From Auanema rhodensis (lineage: Eukaryota > Animalia > Nematoda): a stretch of 64,000 nucleotides of DNA. Location of the stretch: NCBI GenBank assembly GCA_964057225.1, contig OZ059898.1, positions 11,160,001 to 11,224,000 on the forward strand, given 5' to 3'. A program made the position numbers and the translations under genes. Positions within the stretch are counted from its first letter, which is position 1. Each line of letters begins with the position of its first letter. Positions 1-59,000 of the stretch are shown here, piece by piece. Below the pieces are notes generated by a model that was given only the letters and a program-made list of their open reading frames with translations, searched no databases and was not told the DNA's origin.

Positions 1-1283
1 GTGATGAAAATCGAACACTTATTCGAAACCTTCATTTGTTTTCAAACAAACTACAAAAATTTAGAAAAATAACATTTTTAGTTCTAACCTTTTACAGAAT
101 TGAGAACAGTTAAACAAAAATAAAAAATCATGTTTAAAAGTTTTTTTTGGACACTATATTGCCCGTTTAAAACGTCCAGGAGATGCTCCAGAAGAAGCTT
201 TACTCTTTGATCCAGTTCCAAATTTTGTTACAAAAATGTGTCCAAAACTTTATAATTATCTAAAAATAGTAAACCTTCAGTTTTCAATATATAAACAGAC
301 ATGGTGTTTTTGTATTTTTTTGTAGTTTGAACAGCATTTCTGAATTCTTTTAAAGAACACAGTATACAACATATCAACATTTAATTTATTCCCTATCGAG
401 GACATGTATAAAAAGTTCACTTTGTCCTGGTTTTGGAGGTAGACAAATGAGAATACAGGATGGGTTACATTTTTACTATTAAATGAGATTCTATAAAATG
501 TTTCATAAACATATGAGTATTATCGGGTTAATTAATAAAACACAAAACCCCTCCAAGGATCCATATGCTATAAATAAAATATTTTATATTATAAGAATTT
601 CATAATAATCTTTTATCTTGAATCATTTTGCACTATAGGGTACGGATGATGATAACGTTGATTCAACAATCGAAAATCGCTTCCCCTAAAGGAAGATAAT
701 CAAAACCTTTCTTTCAATTCCTTAAACAACAGTTTCCGCCAGTTTACCATTCCTGTTTATATCTATAGGTATGTGATATGCTATATATACATCTCGCATA
801 CCCGAACGACTTCATTAACTTGATTGCTTAAAAAAGCAATTTTCAATACGTGTCTTTGTTCTCAAAAGTGTCAAGTTTTGATGAACGATATTGAAATGTT
901 AAATGATTGGTGACGATATCAAAGATATATTGAGGAGAGAGCTATGCAAAATAATCGAAAGTTCTGATTGTTTAAATGTACGGGTGGGATTATGCTAACC
1001 AGGAACTAGCCAAACACCCAGCTGTTTTAAGGAAATATGATTCCTTAATAAATACGGTTCATATGATAGTGTGATCAGTTCAGTTTCTTCGTAGTCTAAT
1101 TGAATATTATGACGTTTTCGTCGTTCTCACATCCATTCTCTCAATCAAGCATTACAACACTTCGAATCAAAATCTCTTCCGATTCGCGGTATCGCTCAGC
1201 TAATTCTTCGAACCGAACAAAGAATAACTTTTTTCCATTGATATTCACACTTTGATCATTGCGAATCTTTGTTACCTTAACTT

Positions 1284-2366
1284 TTCCAGAAGAAAATGTT
1301 GCGTTGGATTGTAGGATTATTATTGCTTCAAATTTCATTGCAATGTATGAAAACAAATCCGGGAGAGACAAGTAAGTATAAATTTTGATAAATATTACAA
1401 ATTTTCTAATAATGTTTTAAATTTCTTGAATTCTTTTCAGCTACTGTCATGCCTGTAACTACACCTATTCCAGGTTTGATTAACTTATAATCAAAACATT
1501 TATAATTTGTTTTATAGCCACTACACCAGTTATCCCAGGTACTGACAATTTGTTTTAAACTTTCTAAGTATTTACAAACTTGTATTCTTTTTTCTCATTT
1601 CAACTCAAAAAATAGGAAGACCTATATTGAAATTTTAGTGAAAAAAATTAAAAAAGAAGAATAATTGACCCAACCTTATAAGCTTTGAATCTTTCTTACT
1701 ATTCAGATATTGCTTGATCATTCATCCTAACAACTTAACAACTTAACAACTAAAACTTAGTTATCACATCATCTTCATTCATATGCTTTATTACTTTTAA
1801 ACGAATATTCATTATGAGATATATGTATAAGATATTTCTAAACTTCCAAATCTAAATCTGTCCAATCTTTTAATCAAAAAATTAGAAATTTCTCTTTTTA
1901 CAATTGCAATTGAAATGACAAATCGAGGTTAATGCCCTATACTTACATATATCAACAGCTTGAGTTGTAAATTGTCTATCCAAAGAGAAAAAGAGTTTTT
2001 GGGTTTTTCTTCTTTCTCTTACAATCCTCCTTTCTGTTTTTTCTGTATCCATTTATTTTATAATTAAACTATAACAATAATTAAAAATCAAAGCACAATA
2101 TCTTGAAATTCTAGAATACTCCCTAAGAGAATGTTTGGGGAAAATGTCTAAAAAGGGTAAATAATCCTGTTAGAAAGCCATTTCATCCTAGACCAAAAAT
2201 CATAACATCCACATACAGTTTCAGAAGTTTGAAATAAAGACATTCAAATCAGAATTACTAGTTTAATATTGAAATTTGGAAATAATTTGAATATTTATTA
2301 ATAACTTATTATAACTTAAAACCAATTTTACTTTTAACAAACTCATTTTTCTATATTTCCGTACTA
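1284..2366 (+). repeat. Direct duplication copy 1 (partner 6768-7850, offset 5484)
   Basis: About 1080 nt with only two substitutions seen by eye. Covers the acceptor before the ATG, exons 1-3 and most of the long third intron. Confidence 0.95.
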
Positions 2367-5300
2367 TTTACATCATTACATTGCTCAACAATATGAATTT
2401 TTTTCTAATTACAACCATCATCAGCTGAACTCCACTACTGTGTTTACTACAACAGTATACTCACTTATGTTCTTTCTTTTCAAATTTGTCCAACTTGCTT
2501 TTCAGTTACAACACCAGCAGTTACTACCGCTGTGCCAGTGGATACAACAACGGAGATCATAAGTAAGAACTTCCTACTTCTGTTAACCAACTTCATGCTT
2601 TCTATCGCTTTTCTATCCCTTCTGCAACACCTGAGCTTTTATTGGTTCAATTCCCAAAGAGTTATTGAAGTTCTTCCTCTGAGTACCTGAACTAACCTCC
2701 AAAAAATACAGAAGAGACCGATCGCATGCTTGTAACCCAACTGTCCAACTTGCTTTTCAGTTACAACACCAGAAGTTACTACTGCTATACCAGTGGATAC
2801 AACAACGGAGATCATAAGTAAGAACTTCCTACTTCTGTTAACCAACTTCATGCTTTCTATCGCTTTCCACTTGCTTCTGCAAAATCTGAGCTTTTACTGG
2901 TTCAATTCCCAAAGAGTTATTGAAGTTCTTCCTCTGAGTACCTGAACTAACCTCCAAAAAATACAGAAGAGATCGATCGCATGCTTGTAACCCAACTGTC
3001 CAACTTGCTTTTCAGTTACAACACCAGAAGTTACTACTGCTATACCAGTGGATACAACAACGGAGATCATAAGTAAGAACTTCCTACTTCTGTTAACCAA
3101 CTTCATGCTTTCTATCGCTTTCCACTTGCTTCTGCAACTTCTGAGCTTTTATTGGTTCAATTCCCAAAGAGTTATTGAAGTTCTTCCTCTGAGTACCTGA
3201 ACTAACCTCCAAAAAATACAGAAGAGATCGATCGCATGCTTGTAACCCAACTGTCCAACTTGCTTTTCAGTTACAACACCTGAAGTTAGTACTGCTATAC
3301 CAGTAGATACAACAACGGAGATCATAAGTAAGAACTTCCAACTTCTGTTAACCAACTTTATGCTTTCTATCGCTTTCCACTTGCTTCTGCAACTTCTGAG
3401 CCTTTATGCGTTAAGTTCCCGAAGAGTTATTAAAGTTCTTCTCTTAAAACCTGAAATAACATCTGAAAAATTATGAAAAGATTGATCATATCCTTCTAAC
3501 CTAACTTTTCAACTTGCTTTTCAGTTACCACACCTCAGGTTACTACTGCTGTACCAGTGGATACAACAACGGAGATCATAAGTAAGAACTTCCTACTTCT
3601 GTTAACCAACTTCATGCTTTCTATCGCTTTCCACTTGCTTCTGCAAAATCTGAGCTTTTACTGGTTCAATTTCTGACGAGTTATTGAAGTTCTTCCTCTG
3701 AACACCTGAACTAACTTTCGAAAAATACAGAAGAGATCGATCGCATGCTTCTAACCCAACTGTTCAACTTGCTTTTCAGTTACAACACCAGAAGTTACTA
3801 CTGCTGTACCAGTGGATACAACAACGGAGATCATAAGTAAGAACTTCCTACTTCTGTTAACCAACTTCATGCTTTCTATCGCTTTCCACTTGCTTCTGCA
3901 AAATCTGAGCTTTTACTGGTTCAATTTCTGACGAGTTATTGAAGTTCTTCCTCTGAACACCTGAACTAACCTCCAAAAAATACAGAAGAGATCGATCGCA
4001 TGCTTCTAACCCAACTGTTCAACTTGCTTTTCAGTTACAACACCAGAAGTTACTACTGCGGTACCAGTGGATACAACAACGGAGATGATAAGTACGAACT
4101 CCCATGTTCTGTTAACCAACTTTATGCTTTCTATCGCTTTCCTTTTGCTTTTGCAATATCTGAGTTTTTATTGGTTCAGTTCCGAAACAGTTTTTGAAGT
4201 TCTAGCTTTGAAACTTGAATAAACTTTCGAAAAATCGAGAAAAGATCAACCACATGCTTCTAACCTAACTTTTCAACATGCTTTTCAGTCACAACACCTG
4301 AAGTTACTACCGCTGTACCAGTGGATACAACAACGGAGATGATCAGTAAGAACTCCCATGTTCTGTTAACCAACTTCATGCTTTCTATCGCTTTCCTTTT
4401 GCTTTTGCAATATCTGAGTTTTTATTGGTTCAGTTCGGAAACAGTTTTTGAAGTTCTAGCTTTGAAACTTGAATGAACTTTCGAAAAATCGAGAAAAGAT
4501 CAACCACATGCTTCTAACCTAACTATTCAACTTGCTTTTCAGTTACAACACCTGAAGTTACTACTGCTGTACCAGTCGATACAACAACGGAGATGATAAG
4601 TACGAACTCCCATGTTCTGTTAACCAACTTTATGCTTTCTATCACTTTTCTCTTGCTTCTGCAACTTCTGAGCTTTTATTGGTTCAATTCCCAAAGAGTT
4701 ATTGAAGTTCTTCCTCTGAAAACCCTAAATAACATCAGAAAAATTATGAAAACGATCGAGCGCATGCTTCTAACCTAACTATCCAACTTGCTTTTCAGTT
4801 ACAACACCTGAAGTTACTACCGCTGTACCAGTGGATACAACAACGGAGATGATCAGTAAGAACTCCAACTTTCTGTTAACCAACTTCATGCTTTATATTG
4901 CTTTTATCTTGCTTCTGCACTGTTTATGTTGTTTTTCTCTTGGTTATCATAATTTAAACAATATTCGTCGAATATAACAATAAAAAACCGAATTGCATAT
5001 CGGGAAAAATAGAAAGAAAAGAAAAAGTTGCGTTATATCTTGTTTTCGATCGAGATTTATGCTTTTTCAATTTCAAAATATAAAATCAAGAAAAAAAAAG
5101 AAAAATTGAACTTCTTTTCATAATTATCCTTTATGATTTCAATCTATTAATTACATATTCTTTCAGTTACAACCACAGAAGAACCAGTAACTCCAGTACC
5201 CACAGGTATCATCTCAATATTTTCTTATTTTTCAAAGTTTTTTTTAAATTTCATTACATATTAAACATTAATTATTTTATTTTAAAATACTTAAATGTAT

Positions 5301-6012
5301 AATCAGCATAGTTAAATAAACTTTACATGGGAGATATCATGAAACAAAGAAGTTTTAATGATTGTCGTTAAGACTTCACTAATTCTCATGATAGATAAAG
5401 CGGTACGATCCGATAAATCTCTAAATTTCCAGAACTGCCTGGTTCTTAACAACCGGCTCTCTTCTGGAACTTAAAAAACTTTGAACACATTTTAATTTTA
5501 ATCATATTTTAACTGTTTTTATTAAAATATTTCTTTCTTTTTTAACATTCATGTCTACATTTATAATCTACCCTGTTGACAGGATGTGGCGGATGTTTGG
5601 CCGAGGATCTTATTAGATTAACTATTCCCGAAGAAACATTCATCAATGGAGACGTATACATAACGTACACTTTTTCTTATTTATAACAAAGTATTTAATT
5701 CCTTTAGTGATTTTGAAATAAAAAATGGATGTGCAACAGCTATGTTAACATGCACAGGCCCTGGAAATGGAAAAGCTTTCTTACAGGTTTGGTTTCAAAT
5801 ACTTGATTTGCATATATAGAAATGGTAATGGTTTTCAGTTCAACGATCAAACAGTTTCAACTCCTCAGTATGGAGCGCAAAGAATTGTTATAGATATTGA
5901 GTGTAACAAGGATGGAAAGTGGCAATACACAGGACCAGATAAAAGTGTACCTCCAATCATGGTTACAACAGTTATGGATAATTTTTCCTGTGTTTATGGA
6001 ATAATACCTTAA
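1296..6012 (+). CDS. Secreted mucin-stalk / C6-domain protein, paralogue A (17 exons, 357 aa)
   Basis: Hand-spliced exons 1296-1371 (MLRWIVGLLLLQISLQCMKTNPGET), 1441-1473, 1518-1538, ten 57-nt exons starting 2506, 2761, 3016, 3271, 3525, 3780, 4035, 4289, 4543, 4799 (ITTPEVTTAVPVDTTTE[I/M]I), 5167-5205, 5583-5664, 5708-5786, 5839-6012. All GT-AG, phases consistent, total 1074 nt. C-terminal CGGC..GC..TC..EC..W..SC matches the nematode C6 domain pattern. AATAAA at 6070-6075. Confidence 0.85.
2488..4918 (+). repeat. Tandem array of ten 254-256 bp units (57-nt exon + about 198-nt intron), array A
   Basis: ttttcag|TTACAACACC...GAGAT[C/G]AT[A/C]A|gta[a/c]ga recurs at spacings 255, 255, 255, 254, 255, 255, 254, 254, 256. 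Confidence 0.95.
4799..5596 (+). repeat. Direct duplication copy 1 (partner 10410-11207, offset 5611)
   Basis: Last repeat exon, two introns and the linker exon are near-identical between paralogues. Identity ends immediately after GGATGTGGCGGATGT (CGGC). Confidence 0.93.
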
Positions 6013-6767
6013 TATACGTTAATATTATGTATAAAATAATATTGTCAAATATATAAATATTTTTATTTTAATAAATAAATGTTTATAACAGAATTTTCAA
6101 CCAAGAGATATATGATAAACATTTAGCTTTCACATTGTTATGCATTTGCTCTCACACGTTATGATTAAGAAGGCGATGGGGATACATGTGATATTTCATC
6201 AACAGCAAAACCCTTACGAATAACAATGATGAAAGTGTTTCTTTCACTAATTTTTACAATTAATTCTTATATATGTATATTCATAGATAATAAGAGTACT
6301 AAATTGAAATATCCCATTACTGATATTTAAATCTTCAGTACTGATGTCATAATCAGGAATATAAAGGTGTGAGGCTGTTTCAATACATGATCTTTATATG
6401 ATCATGATGCTTCGAATCTATTCAAGTTTTGGAAGATCTGCAATCAAGAATAATGAATAAGATACAGTTTTGTAGTGTTCCTGCTTGAAATCACTCATAA
6501 AACAAAGATTGAAAAAGAATTGAATCTTTAATATTTGAAGGAACATTTTCAATGAGTAAGTATTCCATAGATGTGAAATAACTTATAACTGCTTTAACTC
6601 TGATTAGCAGTAATGAGAAGCGGTTCAAAAAAATGCAAAATGAAATACATGAACTAATATATTAATATATTCTTTCTCTGGGCGTGGCTTATTTCGATCA
6701 TGGGGTGTGGCTTGTCTTTTGACCACACCGAGATCTTGATCATTGTTGAATTTCGATAGCAGAATTG

Positions 6768-7850
6768 TTCCAGAAGAAAATGTTGCGTTGGATTGTAGGA
6801 TTATTATTGCTTCAAATTTCATTGCAATGTATGAAAACAAATCCGGGAGAGACAAGTAAGTATAAATTTTGATAAATATTACAAATTTTCTAATAATGTT
6901 TTAAATTTCTTGAATTCTTTTCAGCTACTGTCATGCCTGTAACTACACCTATTCCAGGTTTGATTAACTTATAATCAAAACATTTATAATTTGTTTTATA
7001 GCCACTACACCAGTTATCCCAGGTACTGACAATTTGTTTTAAACTTTCTAAGTATTTACAAACTTGTATTCTTTTTTCTCATTTCAACTCAAAAAATAGG
7101 AAGACCTATATTGAAATTTTAGTGAAAAAAATTAAAAAAGAAGAATAATTGACCCAACCTTATAAGCTTTGAATCTTTCTTACTATTCAGATATTGCTTG
7201 ATCATTCATCCTAACAACTTAACAACTTAACAACTAAAACTTAGTTATCACATCATCTTCATTCATATGCTTTATTACTTTTAAACGAATATTCATTATG
7301 AGATATATGTATAAGATATTTCTAAACTTCCAAATCTAAATCTGTCCAATCTTTTAATCAAAAAATTAGAAATTTCTCTTTTTACAATTGCAATTGAAAT
7401 GACAAATCGAGGTTAATGCCCTATACTTACATATATCAACAGCTTGAGTTGTAAATTGTCTATCCAAAGAGAAAAAGAGTTTTTGGGTTTTTCTTCTTTC
7501 TCTTACAATCCTCCTTTCTGTTTTTTCTGTATCCATTTATTTTATAATTAAACTATAACAATAATTAAAAATCAAAGCACAATATCTTGAAATTCTAGAA
7601 TACTCCCTAAGAGAATGTTTGGGGAAAATGTCTAAAAAGGGTAAATAATCCTGTTAGAAAGCCATTTCATCCTAGACCAAAAATCATAACATCCACATAC
7701 AGTTTCAGAAGTTTGAAATAAAGACATTCAAATCAGAATTAATAGTTTAATATTGAAATTTGGAAATAATTTGAATATTTATTAATAACTTATTATAACT
7801 TAAAACCAATTTTACTTTTAACAAACTCATTTTTCTACATTTCCGTACTA
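6768..7850 (+). repeat. Direct duplication copy 2 (partner 1284-2366)
   Basis: Direct comparison of the two segments. Confidence 0.95.
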
Positions 7851-10800
7851 AAACAACGACAGTTATAACAACAACCTTACCTTCAATAAGAAAAGAATCT
7901 GAATGTAAGTGAACTAATCACTGCAACCCTGACGACAACTGAAGTTAAACGTAAGCTTCCTGACCCATGCACGCCAATGAAAGCTTGAGGATCCCTCCAC
8001 ACATAACCATTTCATTTCTTTCTCTGAATACCTGAAATATTCTCAACCAAATCGAGAAAAGATGGATCACATGCTTCTAACCTTACGGTCCAATTTGCTT
8101 TTCAGTTACAACACCAGAAGTTACTACTGCTATACCAGTGGATACAACAACGGAGATGATCAGTAAGAACTTCCGCCTTCTGTTAACCAACTTCATGCTT
8201 TCTATCGCTTTCCACTTGTTTCTGCGATATCTGAGCTTTTATTGGTACAATTCACAAAGAGTTATCAAAGTTTTTACTTTGAAAACTTGAAAAAACTTTC
8301 GACATATAATGAAAACAATCGACCACATGCTTCTAGCCTTACGGTCCAATTTGCTTTTCAGTTACCACACCTCAGGTTACTACTGCTGTACCAGTGGATA
8401 CAACAACGGAGATGATCAGTAAGAACTTCCGCCTTCTGTTAACCAACTTCGTGCTTTCTATCGCTTTCCTCTTGCTTCTGCAACTTCTGAGCTTTAATGC
8501 GTTAGGTTCCCAAAGAGTTATTCAAGTTCTTCCTCTGAAAACCCTAAATAACCTCAGAAAAATTATGAAAACGATCGAGCGCATGCTTCTAACCCAACTG
8601 TCCAACTTGCTTTTCAGTTACAACACCAGAAGTTACTACTGCGGTACCAGTGGATACAACAACGGAGATGATAAGTACGAACTCCCATGTTCTGTTAACC
8701 AACTTTATGCTTTCTATCGCTTTCCTCTTGCTTCTGCAACTTCTGAGCTTTTATTGGTTCAATTCCCAAAGAGTTATTCAAGTTCTTCCTCTGAAAACCC
8801 TAAATAACCTCAGAAAAATTATGAAAACGATCGAGCGCATGCTTCTAACCCAACTGTCCAACTTGCTTTTCAGTTACAACACCTGAAGTTACTACTGCTG
8901 TACCAGTGGATACAACAACGGAGATGATAAGTACGAACTCCCATGTTCTGTTAACCAACTTTATGCTTTCTATCACTTTCCTCTTGCTTCTGCAACTTCT
9001 GAGCTTTTATTGGTTCAATTCCCAAAGAGTTATTGAAGTTCTTCCTCTGAAAACCCTAAATAACATCAGAAAAATTATGAAAACGATCGAGCGCATGCTT
9101 CTAACCTAACTATCCAACTTGCTTTTCAGTTACAACACCTGAAGTTACTACCGCTGTACCAGTGGATACAACAACGGAGATGATAAGTACGAACTCCCAT
9201 GTTCTGTTAACCAACTTTATGCTTTCTATCACTTTCCTCTTGCTTCTGCAACTTCTGAGCTTTTATTGGTTCAATTCCCAAAGAGTTATTCAAGTTCTTC
9301 CTCTGAAAACCCTAAATAACCTCAGAAAAATTATGAAAACGATTGAGCGCATGCTTCTAACCCAACTGTCCAACTTGCTTTTCAGTTACAACACCTGAAG
9401 TTACTACTGCTGTACCAGTGGATACAACAACGGAGATGATAAGTACGAACTCCCATGTTCTGTTAACCAACTTTATGCTTTCTATCACTTTCCTCTTGCT
9501 TCTGCAACTTCTGAGCTTTTATTGGTTCAATTCCCAAAGAGTTATTCAAGTTCTTCCTCTGAAAACCCTAAATAACCTCAGAAAAATTATGAAAACGATC
9601 GAGTGCATGCTTTTAACCCAACTGTCCAACTTGCTTTTCAGTTACAACACCTGAAGTTACTACTGCTGTACCAGTGGATACAACAACGGAGATGATAAGT
9701 AAGAACTTCCAACTTCTGTTAACCAACTTCATGCTTTCTATCGCTTTCCTCTTGATTCTGCAACTTCTGAACTTCTATGCGTTAAGTTCCCAAAGAGTTA
9801 TTCAAGTTCTTCCTCTGAAAACCCTAAATAACCTCAGAAAAATTATGAAAACGATCAAGCGCATGCTTCTAACCCAACTGTCCAACTTGCTTTTCAGTTA
9901 CAACACCAGAAGTTACTACTGCGGTACCAGTCGATACAACAACGGAGATGATAAGTACGAACTCCCATGTTCTGTTAACCAACTTTATGCTTTCTATCGC
10001 TTTCATCTCGTTTCTGCAACTTCTGAGCTTCTATGCGTTAAGTTCCCAAAGAGTTATTCAAGTTCTTCCTCTGAAAACCCTAAATAACCTCAGAAAAATT
10101 ATGAAAACGATCAAGCGCATGCTTCTAACCCAACTGTCCAACTTGCTTTTCAGTTACAACACCTGAAGTTACTACTGCTGTACCAGTGGATACAACAACG
10201 GAGATGATAAGTACGAACTCCCATGTTCTGTTAACCAACTTTATGCTTTCTATCGCTTTCATCTCGTTTCTGCAACTTCTGAGCTTTTATTGGTTCAATT
10301 CCCAAAGAGTTATTCAAGTTCTTCCTCTGAAAACCCTAAATAACCTCAGAAAAATTATGAAAACGATTGACCACATGCTTCTAACCTAACTATCCAACTT
10401 GCTTTTCAGTTACAACACCTGAAGTTACTACTGCTGTACCAGTGGATACAACAACGGAGATGATCAGTAAGAACTCCAACTTTCTGTTAACCAACTTCAT
10501 GCTTTATATTGCTTTCATCTTGCTTCTGCACTGTTTATGTTGTTTTTCTCTTGGTTATCATAATTTAAACAATATTCGTCGAATATAACAATAAAAAACC
10601 GAATTGCATATCGGGAAAAATAGAAAGAAAAGAAAAAGTTGCGTTATATCTTGTTTTCGATCGAGATTTATGCTTTTTCAATTTCAAAATATAAAATCAA
10701 GAAAAAAAAAGAAAAATTGAACTTCTTTTCATAATTATCCTTCATGATTTCAATCTATTAATTACATATTCTTTCAGTTACAACCACAGAAGAACCAGTA

Positions 10801-11621
10801 ACTCCAGTACCCACAGGTATCATCTCAATATTTTCTTATTTTTCAAAGTTTTTTTTAAATTTCATTACATATTAAACATTAATTATTTTATTTTAAAATA
10901 CTTAAATGTATAATCAGCATAGTTAAATAAACTTTACATGGGAGATATCATGAAACAAAGAAGTTTTAATGATTGTCGTTAAGACTTCACTAATTCTCAT
11001 GATAGATAAAGCGGTACGATCCGATAAATCTCTAAATTTCCAGAACTGCCTGGTTCTTAACAACCGGCTCTCTTCTGGAACTTAAAAAACTTTGAACACA
11101 TTTTAATTTTAATCATATTTTAACTGTTTTTATTAAAATATTTCTTTCTTTTTTAACATTCATGTCTAAATTTATAATCTACCCTGTTGACAGGATGTGG
11201 CGGATGTACTCTCGATCAACTTCCCCGTTTCGTCATTCCTGAAGATCCTACAACTGGATTTGTAGAAGGAGAGGCATCATTATCGTTTAGTTTACATTTT
11301 TTATCAAAAATCACTCATTCTGTTACAGAGATATTAAAATAGTAAATGGTTGTGCTGTAACAGTTCTCACATGCACAGGCCCTGGAAACGGAGTAGCCTT
11401 CATAACGGTAAGTTTTCATTGTAAATCGTACATACAGTCTTACTTGTTTTCAGTTCAATAGTGAAACTGTATCTAGTCCGGATGCTGATTTAGTTGTTAG
11501 TGTTGAGCTTAATTGTGACGAAAATAAGCAATGGACTTTAATATCCCCGGACCATGAAAATCCGGCAAATTCTGTTACAACAGTGTTGAATAATTATTCT
11601 TGTCAATTTGCATCATTATAA
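6780..11621 (+). CDS. Secreted mucin-stalk / C6-domain protein, paralogue B (17 exons, 358 aa)
   Basis: Exons 6780-6855, 6925-6957, 7002-7022, ten 57-nt exons from 8106 to 10410 at exact 256-bp steps, 10778-10816, 11194-11284, 11329-11407, 11454-11621; 1077 nt in frame. Head CGGCTLDQLPRFVIPEDP...NGCAVTVLTCTGPGNG...ELNCDENKQW...NYSCQFASL. AATAAA at 11641-11646. Confidence 0.85.
8050..10530 (+). repeat. Tandem array of ten 256-bp exon+intron units, array B
   Basis: Exon starts 8106, 8362, 8618, 8874, 9130, 9386, 9642, 9898, 10154, 10410. Confidence 0.95.
10410..11207 (+). repeat. Direct duplication copy 2 (partner 4799-5596)
   Basis: Direct comparison of the two segments. Confidence 0.93.
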
Positions 11622-53000: not shown

Positions 53001-56000
53001 TATCGCCGTCGTTATGATGAGGAACGTGCTCGATATGAAGAACATCTGCGTAGACGTCATGAGGAACAGCGACGTCGTGAGCAAGAGCATCAACGACGTC
53101 TTCAACGGCATCGAATGGAAGAAGAGCGTCGCCATGCCTTCTATCAACAACAGATAGAAGAACAACAGCGCCGCCGCCTTGAAGACGAGAAATTAGCTCA
53201 AATGATTCGTCAGAATCGTCGTCTTCAGCAAAATTTACATTTGATGACCAACAAAGAATTGGATACACTTGTTCCATCGGATGTAGACATGATGAAAATA
53301 TCAGAAGATGTTACCTCATCACCTGAATCTCAAGCTCTCGCTCAACGCTGGTTAAAAACTCGTTTTGATGTCGTAGATCTTCGTCCATCAGAGCGAGTTA
53401 AAAAAGTTCGTTCATTGCGTATTCGAGCAGCTCCAGACGTTCGGAAACGTCGACGTCATCATCCTTGTCGTCCTATAAAATGTCGTTTTCGAGCAATTCA
53501 CTTGAGAACTTAGCTTTTTGAAAACTTTTTTTTGAATTTTTTATATATTTTGAGATGAAACTACTTGTAAATAGGAGAACAGAAGTTTTTTTTTAATCAA
53601 AGTTAATGCATTCCATATTTCAGAGCAATACATATCTGGCTTTGTCTTTGAAAATTCATGTTTTTACTATATCATATATGTGTCTTATTAATGTTTTCCA
53701 AGTTTGCTTCTAATTTACAGTGTGTTATGTGTATCTAACTTGTTTTAAAAATTAATAAATGTTTATTTTACTAATCAAAAGCATGTTATATGTTTCTTAC
53801 TCATAACTTCATTTTTTTTTTTGAAAAAAATGTTATTTTCAGTTCGTATTCAAAAAATTTAATTATTCTTCGCTTTATAGCTCCTCCACTCATTGATACA
53901 TCTCGAGCAGAAGCTAAGCCATCTGTTGTCGAGGGGCATCCCGTTCTTCTTAATTGTCCAGTTAGTGGTCATCCTTTCCCATCTCTGAAATGGCTGAAAG
54001 ATGGATCTAACGTTGAAAGTACAATAAAACAATATCTTCAATTTATTAATTCATATTGTTTTAGATAATGATCAAATTCAAATAACTGAAAATGGACAAA
54101 CTCTTGAGATTCTTGATGCTCGTAAAATACACAGTGGTCGATGGGTATGTATTGCTGAAAATGATGCTGGTGTTAAAGAATTAGAAATTGATTTGGATGT
54201 TTGGAGTACGAACAAACAAAGTATTTTATTCATTAAGTGTTTTTAATTTTAGCTGCTCCAACTGTCTCAGTTACATCAGATTCTCCCATCAAGGCAATAG
54301 GTGATACTGTTACTCTTTTCTGTACTGTTACTGGAAATCCAAATCCAAGCATTTCCTGGAATAAGGCAGGGCAACCAATCATTAACAGTCCTGAAGGAGC
54401 TCGTATATCGCTCAAGGTTTAATAAATTTTTGAAAAATGATAAAAGTTATTTTATTATTGCTTCAGGGAACTCGACTCGATATTCCACATTTAACAAAAG
54501 AAGATGTTGGAGATTATACATGTTTTGCTCAGAATGATGCAGGAACAGCTGAAGCTAGTATTCATGTTGATGTTTTGGGTACCTCACAATACATTTCAAT
54601 CAAAATTTTGAATCATTTCAGTTCCTCCTATTATTAGCAGGGATAATGTTGATATGTCACCTCGATTACCTGCAGGCCAAACTCTTACTTTGGTTTGTGA
54701 TGCTAGTGGTAAACCGCCACCAAAGCATGTCTGGTATAATAAACAAACATTTCATAACATGAAAATTGAAATTAAATCATTTTAGGTATGTGAATGATAC
54801 TGAAATTACTCATGATATGGAGGGAATTACATTGGGAACAAATGGAAAATATATTCAAGTCTGTTATTTAAAGTTTAGAACAAAGTTACAGCATTTTCTA
54901 CAGATTAACAATGTTACTCTACAAGATAAGGGAGTATATTCCTGCGTTTCTTCTAATGTAGCTGGAAATGATTCTTTGATTTTCAATGTGGATGTAGTTC
55001 GTAAGTTTTCAATCTTTATAGTTGGATCATTCAAACAATACAGAGGCACCTATAATTTCTAATGGAGGAGCTCAACAAGTTATTGAGGGTGAGCTGGCTA
55101 AAATTGAATGTTTAGCTGAAGGACATCCTGAGCCTCAGGTTTGAGCGAATTTTTGATGCTTATATATCGTTTTCATGAATCTGTAGATATCTTGGCTTCG
55201 CAACGGTATTCGAGTTGAAACCGGAGTTCAAGGGCTTCGTTATACTGCTACCGGAAAAGTTTTAAATGTATTTGAAGCTCGTAGCTCTGATTCTGGTATT
55301 TATGTTTGTGCTGCTACCAATGAAGCTGGAACTGCTCAACAAGCATATACATTAGAAGTTCTTGGTAGATTATTAGACTTGTTAACGAAGAACGATTATA
55401 CTTAAATGTTTATTTTTAGTTTCTCCAAAGATTATTACCGTATCTCCAACTGAATCAAACATTGCTGTTGGCACTTCATTCTCATTGAAATGCGGTGTCC
55501 GCGGATATCCTGAACCACAAATTACTTGGACAGAGAATGAAGAAGTTATAAACAACAAAGATGGATATACTATTGGTAAGATGACGACACTTTTTTTTTA
55601 ATTAATTCAGCAAAAAAAACAATTTTATAACAAAAGTTCACAAAAATTAAATTTTTTTTTGTGATGGTCACAGATTATATAGTTATAATATACACTTATA
55701 CAAAGTTTTTAATTTAAATATTACATGATCAATTCAATGTTTCTCGAAAATATATTTTTCATTATAATTTTTTCAAACGTTTTAATATTTTGGAATGATT
55801 TCTCTCACTATTTTCTTACGAACAAGTCAGAGAACCTTTTTATTAAAAATACTTGACTAGTTATTAGGATTATATTATTTTAGATGATGATGGAACCTTG
55901 CATGTTGATATGGCTCAAGGCAGAGATTTGCACTACAGGTGTATTGCTGAAAATGATGCTGGAAAAACTGATATTGAATATAGCATTAACACAATCAGTA

Positions 56001-59000
56001 AGAATTCTTATGCATTTCCAACGTTTGGAACATGTTTTTAGGCGCTCCTGTTGCAACCGGAGATGGTGAGACAGCTCAAAATGCTACAGAAGGCAATCCT
56101 GCCACAATACGCTGTAACATTGATGGAGACATGCCGCAGATATCTTGGCAGAAGGTTACTACTTTTCAGAATTTTTTTGTTTTGCTGTTATTTCGATAGA
56201 AACTCTAAACAACTGGAATTATTTCAGAGTGGAATGGCTGTTTTGCCATCAACCACTATCGACTTCAGTGAAGATCGTATGGAATTGCTGTTAAAGTCTG
56301 TTCGATTAAGCGATGAAGGTGTTTACATCTGCACAGCCATTAACTCCGCCGGAAATGCAACTCATAAAACAATTCTATATGTTGGAGGTACGAGTTTATC
56401 AGGATTGATTAAAGTGAAAAAATGGTTTGAATTGGCTAATAATCACTTTAATCATTTGAACAATGTAGATCTAAATTATAGAAAGAAAAAAGAGATTGGG
56501 AAAGAAATATGTATGTGTATGTAGTGGGTACGAGGACATGGATGTAGAAAATAAATTTGAATTTAAAAGCTAGAATAGACTATTTACGTCAATTCTATAT
56601 AAGTTGAAGCTTTTGGATTACAACTTTGTAAAATCTGTATTGCACAAAACTTGAAACATTAACAATATCAGATAAGACAATGAGCTTTTTTAACATAAAC
56701 GTTCATGAGGAATTAAAATATTATTGAAATGTTAGTTTCCTTTCGAGACCAAGTATATTCCTGTTAGCTAATCATATTCATAGTACTCATCCATTATTCC
56801 CTGAAATATTTTAATAATAAGAAGTATAACTTAAGTTTTAGCAAGGCAAGCACGTCAACCTAGTTTCTAATCTTGCATATTAAATGAAAAGATTTATCTC
56901 GACACACCTTGTTTGGCAGAAATTTTTTCCGAAAAACTCGCAAAAAATTTTTAAATACTTTGGGATCCATCTGTTCGTCTTCAGAATTCTAAAATAAAAG
57001 AAATTAGTTTTTTGGTATAAAACTATGCTGTTACTTCTGAATTATACAGATCGTTCATTATTTCATCAGGATTGAGTCCTTAAAAAAATAAATTCTTGCA
57101 TAGTTTCAACAAATATATGAGAACTTACGGAAAGCCGATGTCACGTAAAAAACACTAAGTGTTAATAAAACTAGTGAAACTAGAAACGACTTCATCAATC
57201 TCCCTGAAATCTGAGGGCATTTAGTCAACAGTAAACACAAAAGACACAACATCTCAAACGGAATCGTCAAGAAATAAATACGAATATGGGAAAAATCTTT
57301 AGCGAGAGAGAGTGATAATTTGAGAGATAGAGAGAACAGGGGGATGAAAGAGAAGAACTGGGAAATCGAGAGAAATGGAATGGAAGGGATAAGACAATTT
57401 TTGCTAGAGAAGGGTTTGAATTGTGTAGTGAAATGAAATGAAACGATGTAATATGTGATCATGATGAGTTTGAAACGAAGAATAAATATGGAAATATGTC
57501 GGTTCGCAAGCTTTTGATAGAAATATTTTTCAATACAGCTAATTACATGGAAAAAATGTAACAATTGTGAAAATTAAATCGAAAAATGACAATTATATCC
57601 AATTTAAAAAGAATTTTTTTATTGAACTGTAAATTGAATATTAAATATAAATAGAAGAGCAAAATTAGTAAGGTATAGATGACGGAACATAGGGAGAATG
57701 AGATAGGGGAGGAGGAGAATGAAAGGACGTCAGGATAGGATGATGTAACTTGAAAGGCACACATTATGTTTTGGAAAACAATAGTAAAATCTTGAATAAA
57801 ATTTGAAGAAACAAAAATGATACTAGTTTTATATAGTAGAAAAATGATAAAAACGTTGTTCAAATCAGTTTTTTAAATTATATTTTCAGTACCACCCAGA
57901 ATATCTGATGGATCTCCTAAAGTAACATTTAAAAATGGAGAAGCTGCTACATTATGGTAATCTGAAACTGCTTTTAGTAGACATTTTTAATAAATTCACG
58001 GAAAAATAGAACAGAAAATCAAAATAAAATTAGAGAAACACTTTTTTTAAATCATGTTTTTAGGTGTGAAGCTGTCGGTGTGCCTACTCCCAATATAACA
58101 TGGTGGAAAGGTGACACGATGCTCAACAACAGTAAGTTATTTCCAACATTTTTCTCAAATTTGTAAAAAGTTAAAATGCATTCTTACATTGAATGTACTT
58201 ATAAATTTCAATTATTTTATGAAAATTGGTGTGCAGATGGTAATAGAAATTAGTGTTTTTGAACTTAAAGATTTGCTTTCTTCTAATTTACAACGTGCTG
58301 CAAAAAACTTCAAAAAAGTTATATTAGATGCACAATTTGATTCAAATTCGTTTTTCCCAGTCAAAATATAAATAAATGATAATTAATTGTTAAACATAAT
58401 TCAACTATATATTTTAGCTGGTATTGATGATCATAGTAATTCACCAAAAAAATCAGCAATCTTCAATGCTGTGTCAATTGATGATGCTGGAATATATACT
58501 TGTAAAGTGGATAATTGGGCCGGAACAACAGAAAAAGATTTCGATCTGATCGTGCTGAGTAAGTTTGAATATAGCAACATCTGAAGCATTTGAAAGAAGG
58601 TTGGGTCTCGAACATAAAAGAGGATGGCGCATTTGAGTATGAAATCAAAAAGGGAAACACATAACGAGAAGAGATTAAGTGAAAGCGTAGCTTGCTAACT
58701 AACTAACCGAATCGAGATATATTAGAAAACGTTAGATGAAAGTCGAAAACTATTTTTATTCCTATTGGTGTATAGTTTGCATAAATTAATAAAAAATGAC
58801 CTTAAAGTAAAATAACACACATATACTATGATGATATATCATTTGAATATGTGTAGGATGTTCTAGTGAAGCACAAAGTAATTAGTTGTGTATTTGATTG
58901 AGAAGTATCCGAGAATGCAATTGTTTTTCAATTTTTTTCTATTGATAGTTTCGTTGGAGGAAGAAAAAATGAATGATGTGAATTTTTAAGTGGTTGCCAA

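Follow-up and report, generated by a model that had tools for sequence, protein, structure and literature searches.

Orphan small secreted-protein genes nested in introns form a broad class that is common in nematodes. In working genes for secreted proteins, the signal peptide is typically encoded in exon 1 and is followed by a phase-1 consensus donor. Ascaris cecropin precursors have an acidic C-terminal pro-region, and both they and the amphibian preprodermaseptin-type precursors are built in the order signal peptide, acidic piece, Lys/Arg/Phe amphipathic segment and acidic tail.

Here we describe a candidate gene that lies antisense within a hemicentin intron of the nematode Auanema rhodense. 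We put the probability at roughly one half that the candidate is a real, lineage-restricted (orphan) gene for a small secreted protein. The window, i.e. the whole 64,000-nt stretch of DNA that was analysed, is C6:11,160,001-11,224,000 of the 180,911,798-base A. rhodense assembly. The germline assembly of A. rhodense APS4 (180.9 Mb) consists of seven chromosome scaffolds with 11,943 annotated genes, nearly all of which carry functional annotation (bioRxiv 10.64898/2026.08.27.747507). Small orphan genes may well be under-called in such a conservative annotation. Hence, the absence of the candidate from the published annotation means little.

The features of the locus are given below by their positions in the window; the bit scores of splice sites come from an approximate C. 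elegans-type matrix and are valid for relative ranking alone.

56389-57889, plus strand: 1,501-nt hemicentin intron that hosts the candidate, with Ig-domain exons read on either side
57204-57210, minus strand: ATTTCAG acceptor, a consensus 3' splice site of trans-splice-like type, read directly
57195-57193, minus strand: start codon ATG, separated by 8 nt (57203-57196) from the AG of ATTTCAG
57129-57195, minus strand: coding part of exon 1, 67 nt, translated into 22 residues and ending in phase 1
57079-57128, minus strand: intron 1, 50 nt, from GTAAGT to AAG, donor 4.5 bits, acceptor 3.7 bits
57035-57078, minus strand: exon 2, 44 nt, translated into an acidic stretch of net charge -4
56989-57034, minus strand: intron 2, 46 nt, from GTAACA to TAG, donor 0.0 bits, acceptor 1.7 bits, the weakest intron of the model
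56908-56988, minus strand: exon 3, 81 nt, with an acidic start and then an 18-residue Lys/Arg/Phe-rich core that contains RKK
56801-56907, minus strand: intron 3, 107 nt, from GTGTGT to CAG, donor 1.9 bits, acceptor 5.5 bits
56768-56800, minus strand: coding part of exon 4, encoding 10 residues, three of them Tyr in an Asp/Glu setting, and the stop codon TAG (56770-56768)

The hemicentin exon before the host intron stops at 56388 and the next begins at 57890 (plus strand), and the candidate sits mid-intron, with about 680 nt upstream of its ATG and about 380 nt downstream of its stop. The host intron exceeds the neighbouring hemicentin introns, which measure approximately 44, 73, 107 and 286 nt, 5- to 35-fold in length. 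It is single copy (a DNA search of the organism's own genome returned only the self-match), and scans of it gave no Rfam match and no notable repeats. The literature on the C. elegans him-4 locus (F15G9.x) yielded nothing relevant on small genes there. Upstream of the candidate, the tract at 57300-57900 has a strong strand skew, with a CT-rich minus strand and a plus-strand GC skew of up to 0.57, and holds CTCT-type low-complexity runs; it could be promoter or outron material, or a mere simple-sequence tract in the hemicentin intron.

The hemicentin gene itself departs from the usual splice sites. Three of its five consecutive introns at 55998-58417 (plus strand) end in TAG rather than CAG, and non-consensus donors (GTTACT, GTACGA and GTAATC) occur among them, with donor scores down to -0.8. 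Hence, the splice consensus is looser in A. rhodense than in C. elegans.

We found the gene structure proposed in the initial annotation to be present in the DNA. The ATTTCAG at 57210-57204 stands 8 nt before the ATG, the three introns are GT-AG and phase-compatible, and the four exons add up to 225 coding nt (74 codons plus stop), through which the frame runs uninterrupted (0 stops and 0 frameshifts). The acidic, cationic and acidic/Tyr-rich parts that had been described for the product agree exactly with our exon translations. Exon 1 had been called the only exon captured by an open reading frame, and it does lie at the end of a longer one, the 152-aa frame at 57106-57564, which is the sole long plain ORF at the locus. 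The alternative ending that had been predicted was found too: with intron 3 retained, the frame ends 15 codons on with two Cys (ORF 56860-56970).

The 21-residue signal peptide claimed for exon 1 passed a heuristic rule, which asks for a basic residue soon after the start, an uncharged core of 12 residues with a mean hydropathy of at least 2.0 and small residues at -3/-1. In the exon 1 product, residue 2 is K, 16 uncharged hydrophobic residues follow one another, and the predicted cut comes after T-S-A. Applied to both strands of 244 kb, the rule gave 20 native ATGs, listed with their flanking sites, versus 3 in reversed DNA; an earlier count of native signal-like ATGs was 23, and the listing of 20 omits sites near the ends of stretches. 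The hydrophobic core of the candidate (mean 2.68 on the Kyte-Doolittle scale over 12 residues) ranks at the top of these 20, and the candidate alone among them has a consensus acceptor on one side and a GTAAGT donor on the other. Two other listed ATGs have a GTAAGT-class donor, and both are part of a clearly real duplicated secreted-protein gene.

That duplicated gene is a tandem duplication of a roughly 5.5-kb unit within positions 1-11000 of the window (plus-strand ATGs at 1296 and 6780, arrays at 2487-4919 and 8056-10530). The two copies have identical signal-peptide exons, each up to the GTAAGT donor, and each copy carries about 9.5 repeats of a 255/256-bp unit. This 255/256-bp unit resembles an exon together with its intron, repeated as a module of a secreted, mucin-like protein rich in Thr, Pro and Val.

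The donors and acceptors of the candidate all score within the range of the five adjacent hemicentin introns. ATTTCAG scores 5.5 bits; across 488 kb of strand sequence, only 1.2% of ATGs have an acceptor this strong up to 40 nt upstream. From the candidate ATG, 39 spliced paths are possible; of the long ones, the proposed path ranks first by mean site score. Two features of the locus count against a gene: the ATG context lacks the usual A at -3, and no canonical AATAAA was found within 250 nt past the stop.

We weighed these features against the explanation that no gene exists and that the frame is open by chance, the A- and T-runs of an AT-rich intron mimicking a hydrophobic start, Lys and Phe codons and GT/AG pairs. 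Overall, we hold this explanation to be somewhat unlikely. The rate of a signal exon with its sites was estimated from 1,500 block-wise dinucleotide shuffles of the window. Signal-like ATGs of equal hydrophobicity arose 0.7-1.0 times per shuffled window, i.e. about once per window by chance, in keeping with a chance frame, and those that extended to at least 70 aa arose 0.07 times per window. For a signal-like ATG that also has an equally strong acceptor no more than 40 nt upstream and is followed by a GTAAGT-class donor, the rate was 6.7e-4 per window. Because the thresholds were set at the observed values after the data had been seen, these chance rates are optimistic and the true ones are possibly 1-2 orders of magnitude higher. 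When exon 1 was held fixed and the downstream DNA was shuffled, a continuation to at least 70 aa through sites no weaker than the weakest one used was obtained in 0.7% of trials; in reversed real DNA, a 48-aa continuation was available for 0.26% of donors. The joint structure was seen nowhere in 488 kb of reversed real DNA, which argues against chance, as does the proposed path being also the best-scoring spliced path. With the chance rates multiplied and the post hoc thresholds allowed for, a genome is expected to contain well under one instance of the full set of signal peptide, acceptor, donor and 52-codon continuation. Thus, the sequence anatomy and the chance statistics support the reading of the candidate as a gene for a small secreted product.

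Codon usage was scored after training on 56 long frames of the A. rhodense genome. The candidate scored +2.0, which falls between the -6.2 (sd 5.1) of the null and the +5.3 (sd 5.3) of real exons; this corresponds to a likelihood ratio of about 2.9 in favour of coding, i.e. weakly coding, and places the candidate in the top 6% of chance frames. The GC content of its exons (0.30-0.33) is barely over the intron background and under that of the hemicentin exons, which counts against a gene and agrees with a chance frame. Gene-like anatomy combined with weak codon usage is also what would be seen if the exon-intron structure were real and made no working protein, as in a decaying gene, a nascent gene or an antisense non-coding hemicentin transcript. 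The frame is intact through four exons, without a stop or frameshift, and the signal peptide falls exactly in exon 1 ahead of a phase-1 consensus donor; both speak against this explanation, which we consider clearly unlikely.

Relatives of the candidate were sought with single exon frames as queries against collections of 5.8 and 15 billion proteins. In word-based searches, a 60-aa reference that ends in exon 1 had no match among targets of 33-105 aa, and the 42-aa frame of exon 3 with its intron read-through had none among targets of 23-73 aa, an upper limit that lies just under the 74-aa model. We found no credible match to the 42-aa frame by an exhaustive phmmer search of 1.84 billion representatives of any length, in which an identical exon 3 scores 50.9 bits and would be listed. 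Hence, no protein in the searched collections contains exon 3. The lone phmmer match, a 516-aa translated tandem repeat, aligns seven times, weakly and in part to intron-derived residues, and was rejected as spurious. An exact look-up in the protein collections of nine ATG-start ORFs around the candidate found 0 of 9, and searches of the A. rhodense genome for paralogues of exon 1, exon 3 and the 443-nt locus returned only self-matches.

The orthologous locus was sought through the flanking hemicentin exon frame, which had no match in a word-based protein search. The single locus from a metagenome scan, contig Ga0126335_1029113, was considered as a hemicentin orthologue and rejected: its Ig domain is 59% identical to the hemicentin exon over 29 residues, and the contig holds a generic Ig domain together with reverse-transcriptase ORFs and is of animal, unrelated origin, not a nematode hemicentin orthologue. 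The absence of homologue, paralogue and product from the collections and genome searched is in line with a frame open by chance, and the lack of a product in the collections weighs somewhat against expression. Likewise, the failure of these searches to return relatives of any kind, or the product itself, fits an exon-intron structure that makes no working protein.

If the candidate is a gene for a secreted protein, as we favour, predicted cleavage after residue 21 would leave 53 residues, 12 of them acidic and 8 basic (net charge about -4). The cationic amphipathic core announced in the initial annotation is borne out in its charge, which is +7 over 18 residues; its amphipathicity is modestly above chance, the hydrophobic moment of 0.55 having p = 0.06 versus permutations and p = 0.03 versus equally cationic 18-mers from chance frames. 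The moment reaches 0.8-1.0 in the first 11-14 residues, and a Pro sits inside the core. Among all 18-mers in chance frames of the A. rhodense genome, 1% already have a charge of at least +6, and the DNA of the core alternates between A-runs and T-runs, a coding of K/F-rich sequence that tends to be typical of AT-rich non-coding intron DNA; both points favour a chance frame. A 10-bp periodicity of the A/T-runs, as the origin of the amphipathic pattern, is faintly visible and is not claimed.

The layout of signal peptide, acidic flanks and cationic core had been taken as that of an alpha-helical antimicrobial peptide precursor, in which the amphipathic helix would be masked by the acidic flanks until its release. 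These parts are all present, and the charge of +7, the high moment of the 11-14-residue stretch and the likeness to the amphibian and Ascaris cecropin precursors agree with such a product. However, the core has no basic cleavage site at its borders, D-P and K-G-I; RKK, the one basic cluster, is found inside it, directly after a Phe. Hence, processing of the known type would split the core and not release it. In addition, the product is net acidic (-4), the amphipathicity of the full core is marginal, Pro interrupts it, and similarity to known families is nil, the sole match being the spurious tandem-repeat protein. We therefore regard an antimicrobial precursor as very improbable. Amidation is not expected either: the basic cluster is not preceded by Gly, and the single Gly stands before I-M-D.

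Sulfation of the C-terminal tyrosines, which had been suggested as well, fares better. Three Tyr and four Asp/Glu occur among the 10 C-terminal residues, and the A. rhodense genome contains a match to PF13469 (Sulfotransfer_3, TPST-type) of 102 bits at C6:8456201-8456656. This domain, at C6:8456201-8456985, is split over at least two exons and lies on the same chromosome as the window; the locus is probably a tyrosylprotein sulfotransferase gene. Hence, with Tyr among acidic residues and a TPST-type domain in the genome, sulfation of the predicted product is plausible.

From the layout of the locus, we propose the following course for the candidate as a secreted-protein gene. Transcription would start within the stretch of roughly 680 nt that separates the ATG from the next hemicentin exon, and the 5' end would be trimmed at ATTTCAG, either by trans-splicing or by joining to an upstream non-coding exon. 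The three short introns would then be removed. The 74-residue product would enter the secretory pathway, shed its 21-residue signal peptide and be released as a 53-residue, net acidic protein, in which the two acidic flanks would surround, and probably neutralise, the short basic amphipathic segment. The C-terminal tyrosines of the released protein would be good candidates for sulfation. A prohormone convertase, if one acts, would have RKK as its only site and would produce two fragments and no free cationic helix. We consider a processed secreted peptide with a signalling or matrix-associated role more likely than a membrane-active antimicrobial. A bolder version, in which this is a young, Auanema-specific and possibly de novo gene for a self-masked peptide of a new type, whose cationic helix is kept inactive by its acidic sulfated flanks and serves defence or matrix binding, strikes us as highly unlikely.

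If real, the candidate would be one more unannotated orphan secreted peptide for a nematode with a conservative set of 11,943 genes, a second gene nested antisense in hemicentin and a small example of AT-rich intron DNA yielding a secreted peptide gene. It is an ordinary kind of finding and, taken alone, opens no long-standing question.

We compared the predicted product with four known kinds of gene or precursor. The antimicrobial precursors share its order of parts, as set out above, and differ in that their KR or polybasic sites lie exactly at the borders of the pro-pieces, whereas the candidate has none there and has RKK inside its core; the core is also short and Pro-interrupted, and sequence similarity to these precursors is lacking. 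FLP/NLP neuropeptide precursors are, like the candidate, small secreted precursors with one internal basic cluster (RKK in the candidate), and the end of the stretch before RKK loosely recalls the FLRF of FLP-1 peptides. Unlike them, the candidate has no Gly as an amidation donor, no RF-Gly motif and no repeated peptide copies, and neither the word-based nor the exhaustive search, whose reach is limited by the short queries, found an orthologue of it in a nematode proteome. Sulfated tails of the hirudin, PSGL-1 and cholecystokinin type resemble the C-terminus of the candidate, a predicted secretory protein with three Tyr in 7 Asp/Glu-rich residues, and share no homology with it.

Of the unannotated antimicrobial or signalling peptide first proposed, the small secreted gene is supported by anatomy and statistics. 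An antimicrobial or signalling function is supported by none of the tests, and of each of these classes the candidate lacks one defining feature. Among known kinds, the orphan small secreted-protein gene nested in an intron fits it best. The candidate differs from the nested orphan genes of nematodes in an exon composition that is barely distinct from the intron background. Like them, it is small, has its signal peptide in a first exon that precedes a phase-1 intron, contains tiny introns, carries a trans-splice-type acceptor near its ATG, sits in a long intron within a large host gene and lacks relatives outside its lineage.
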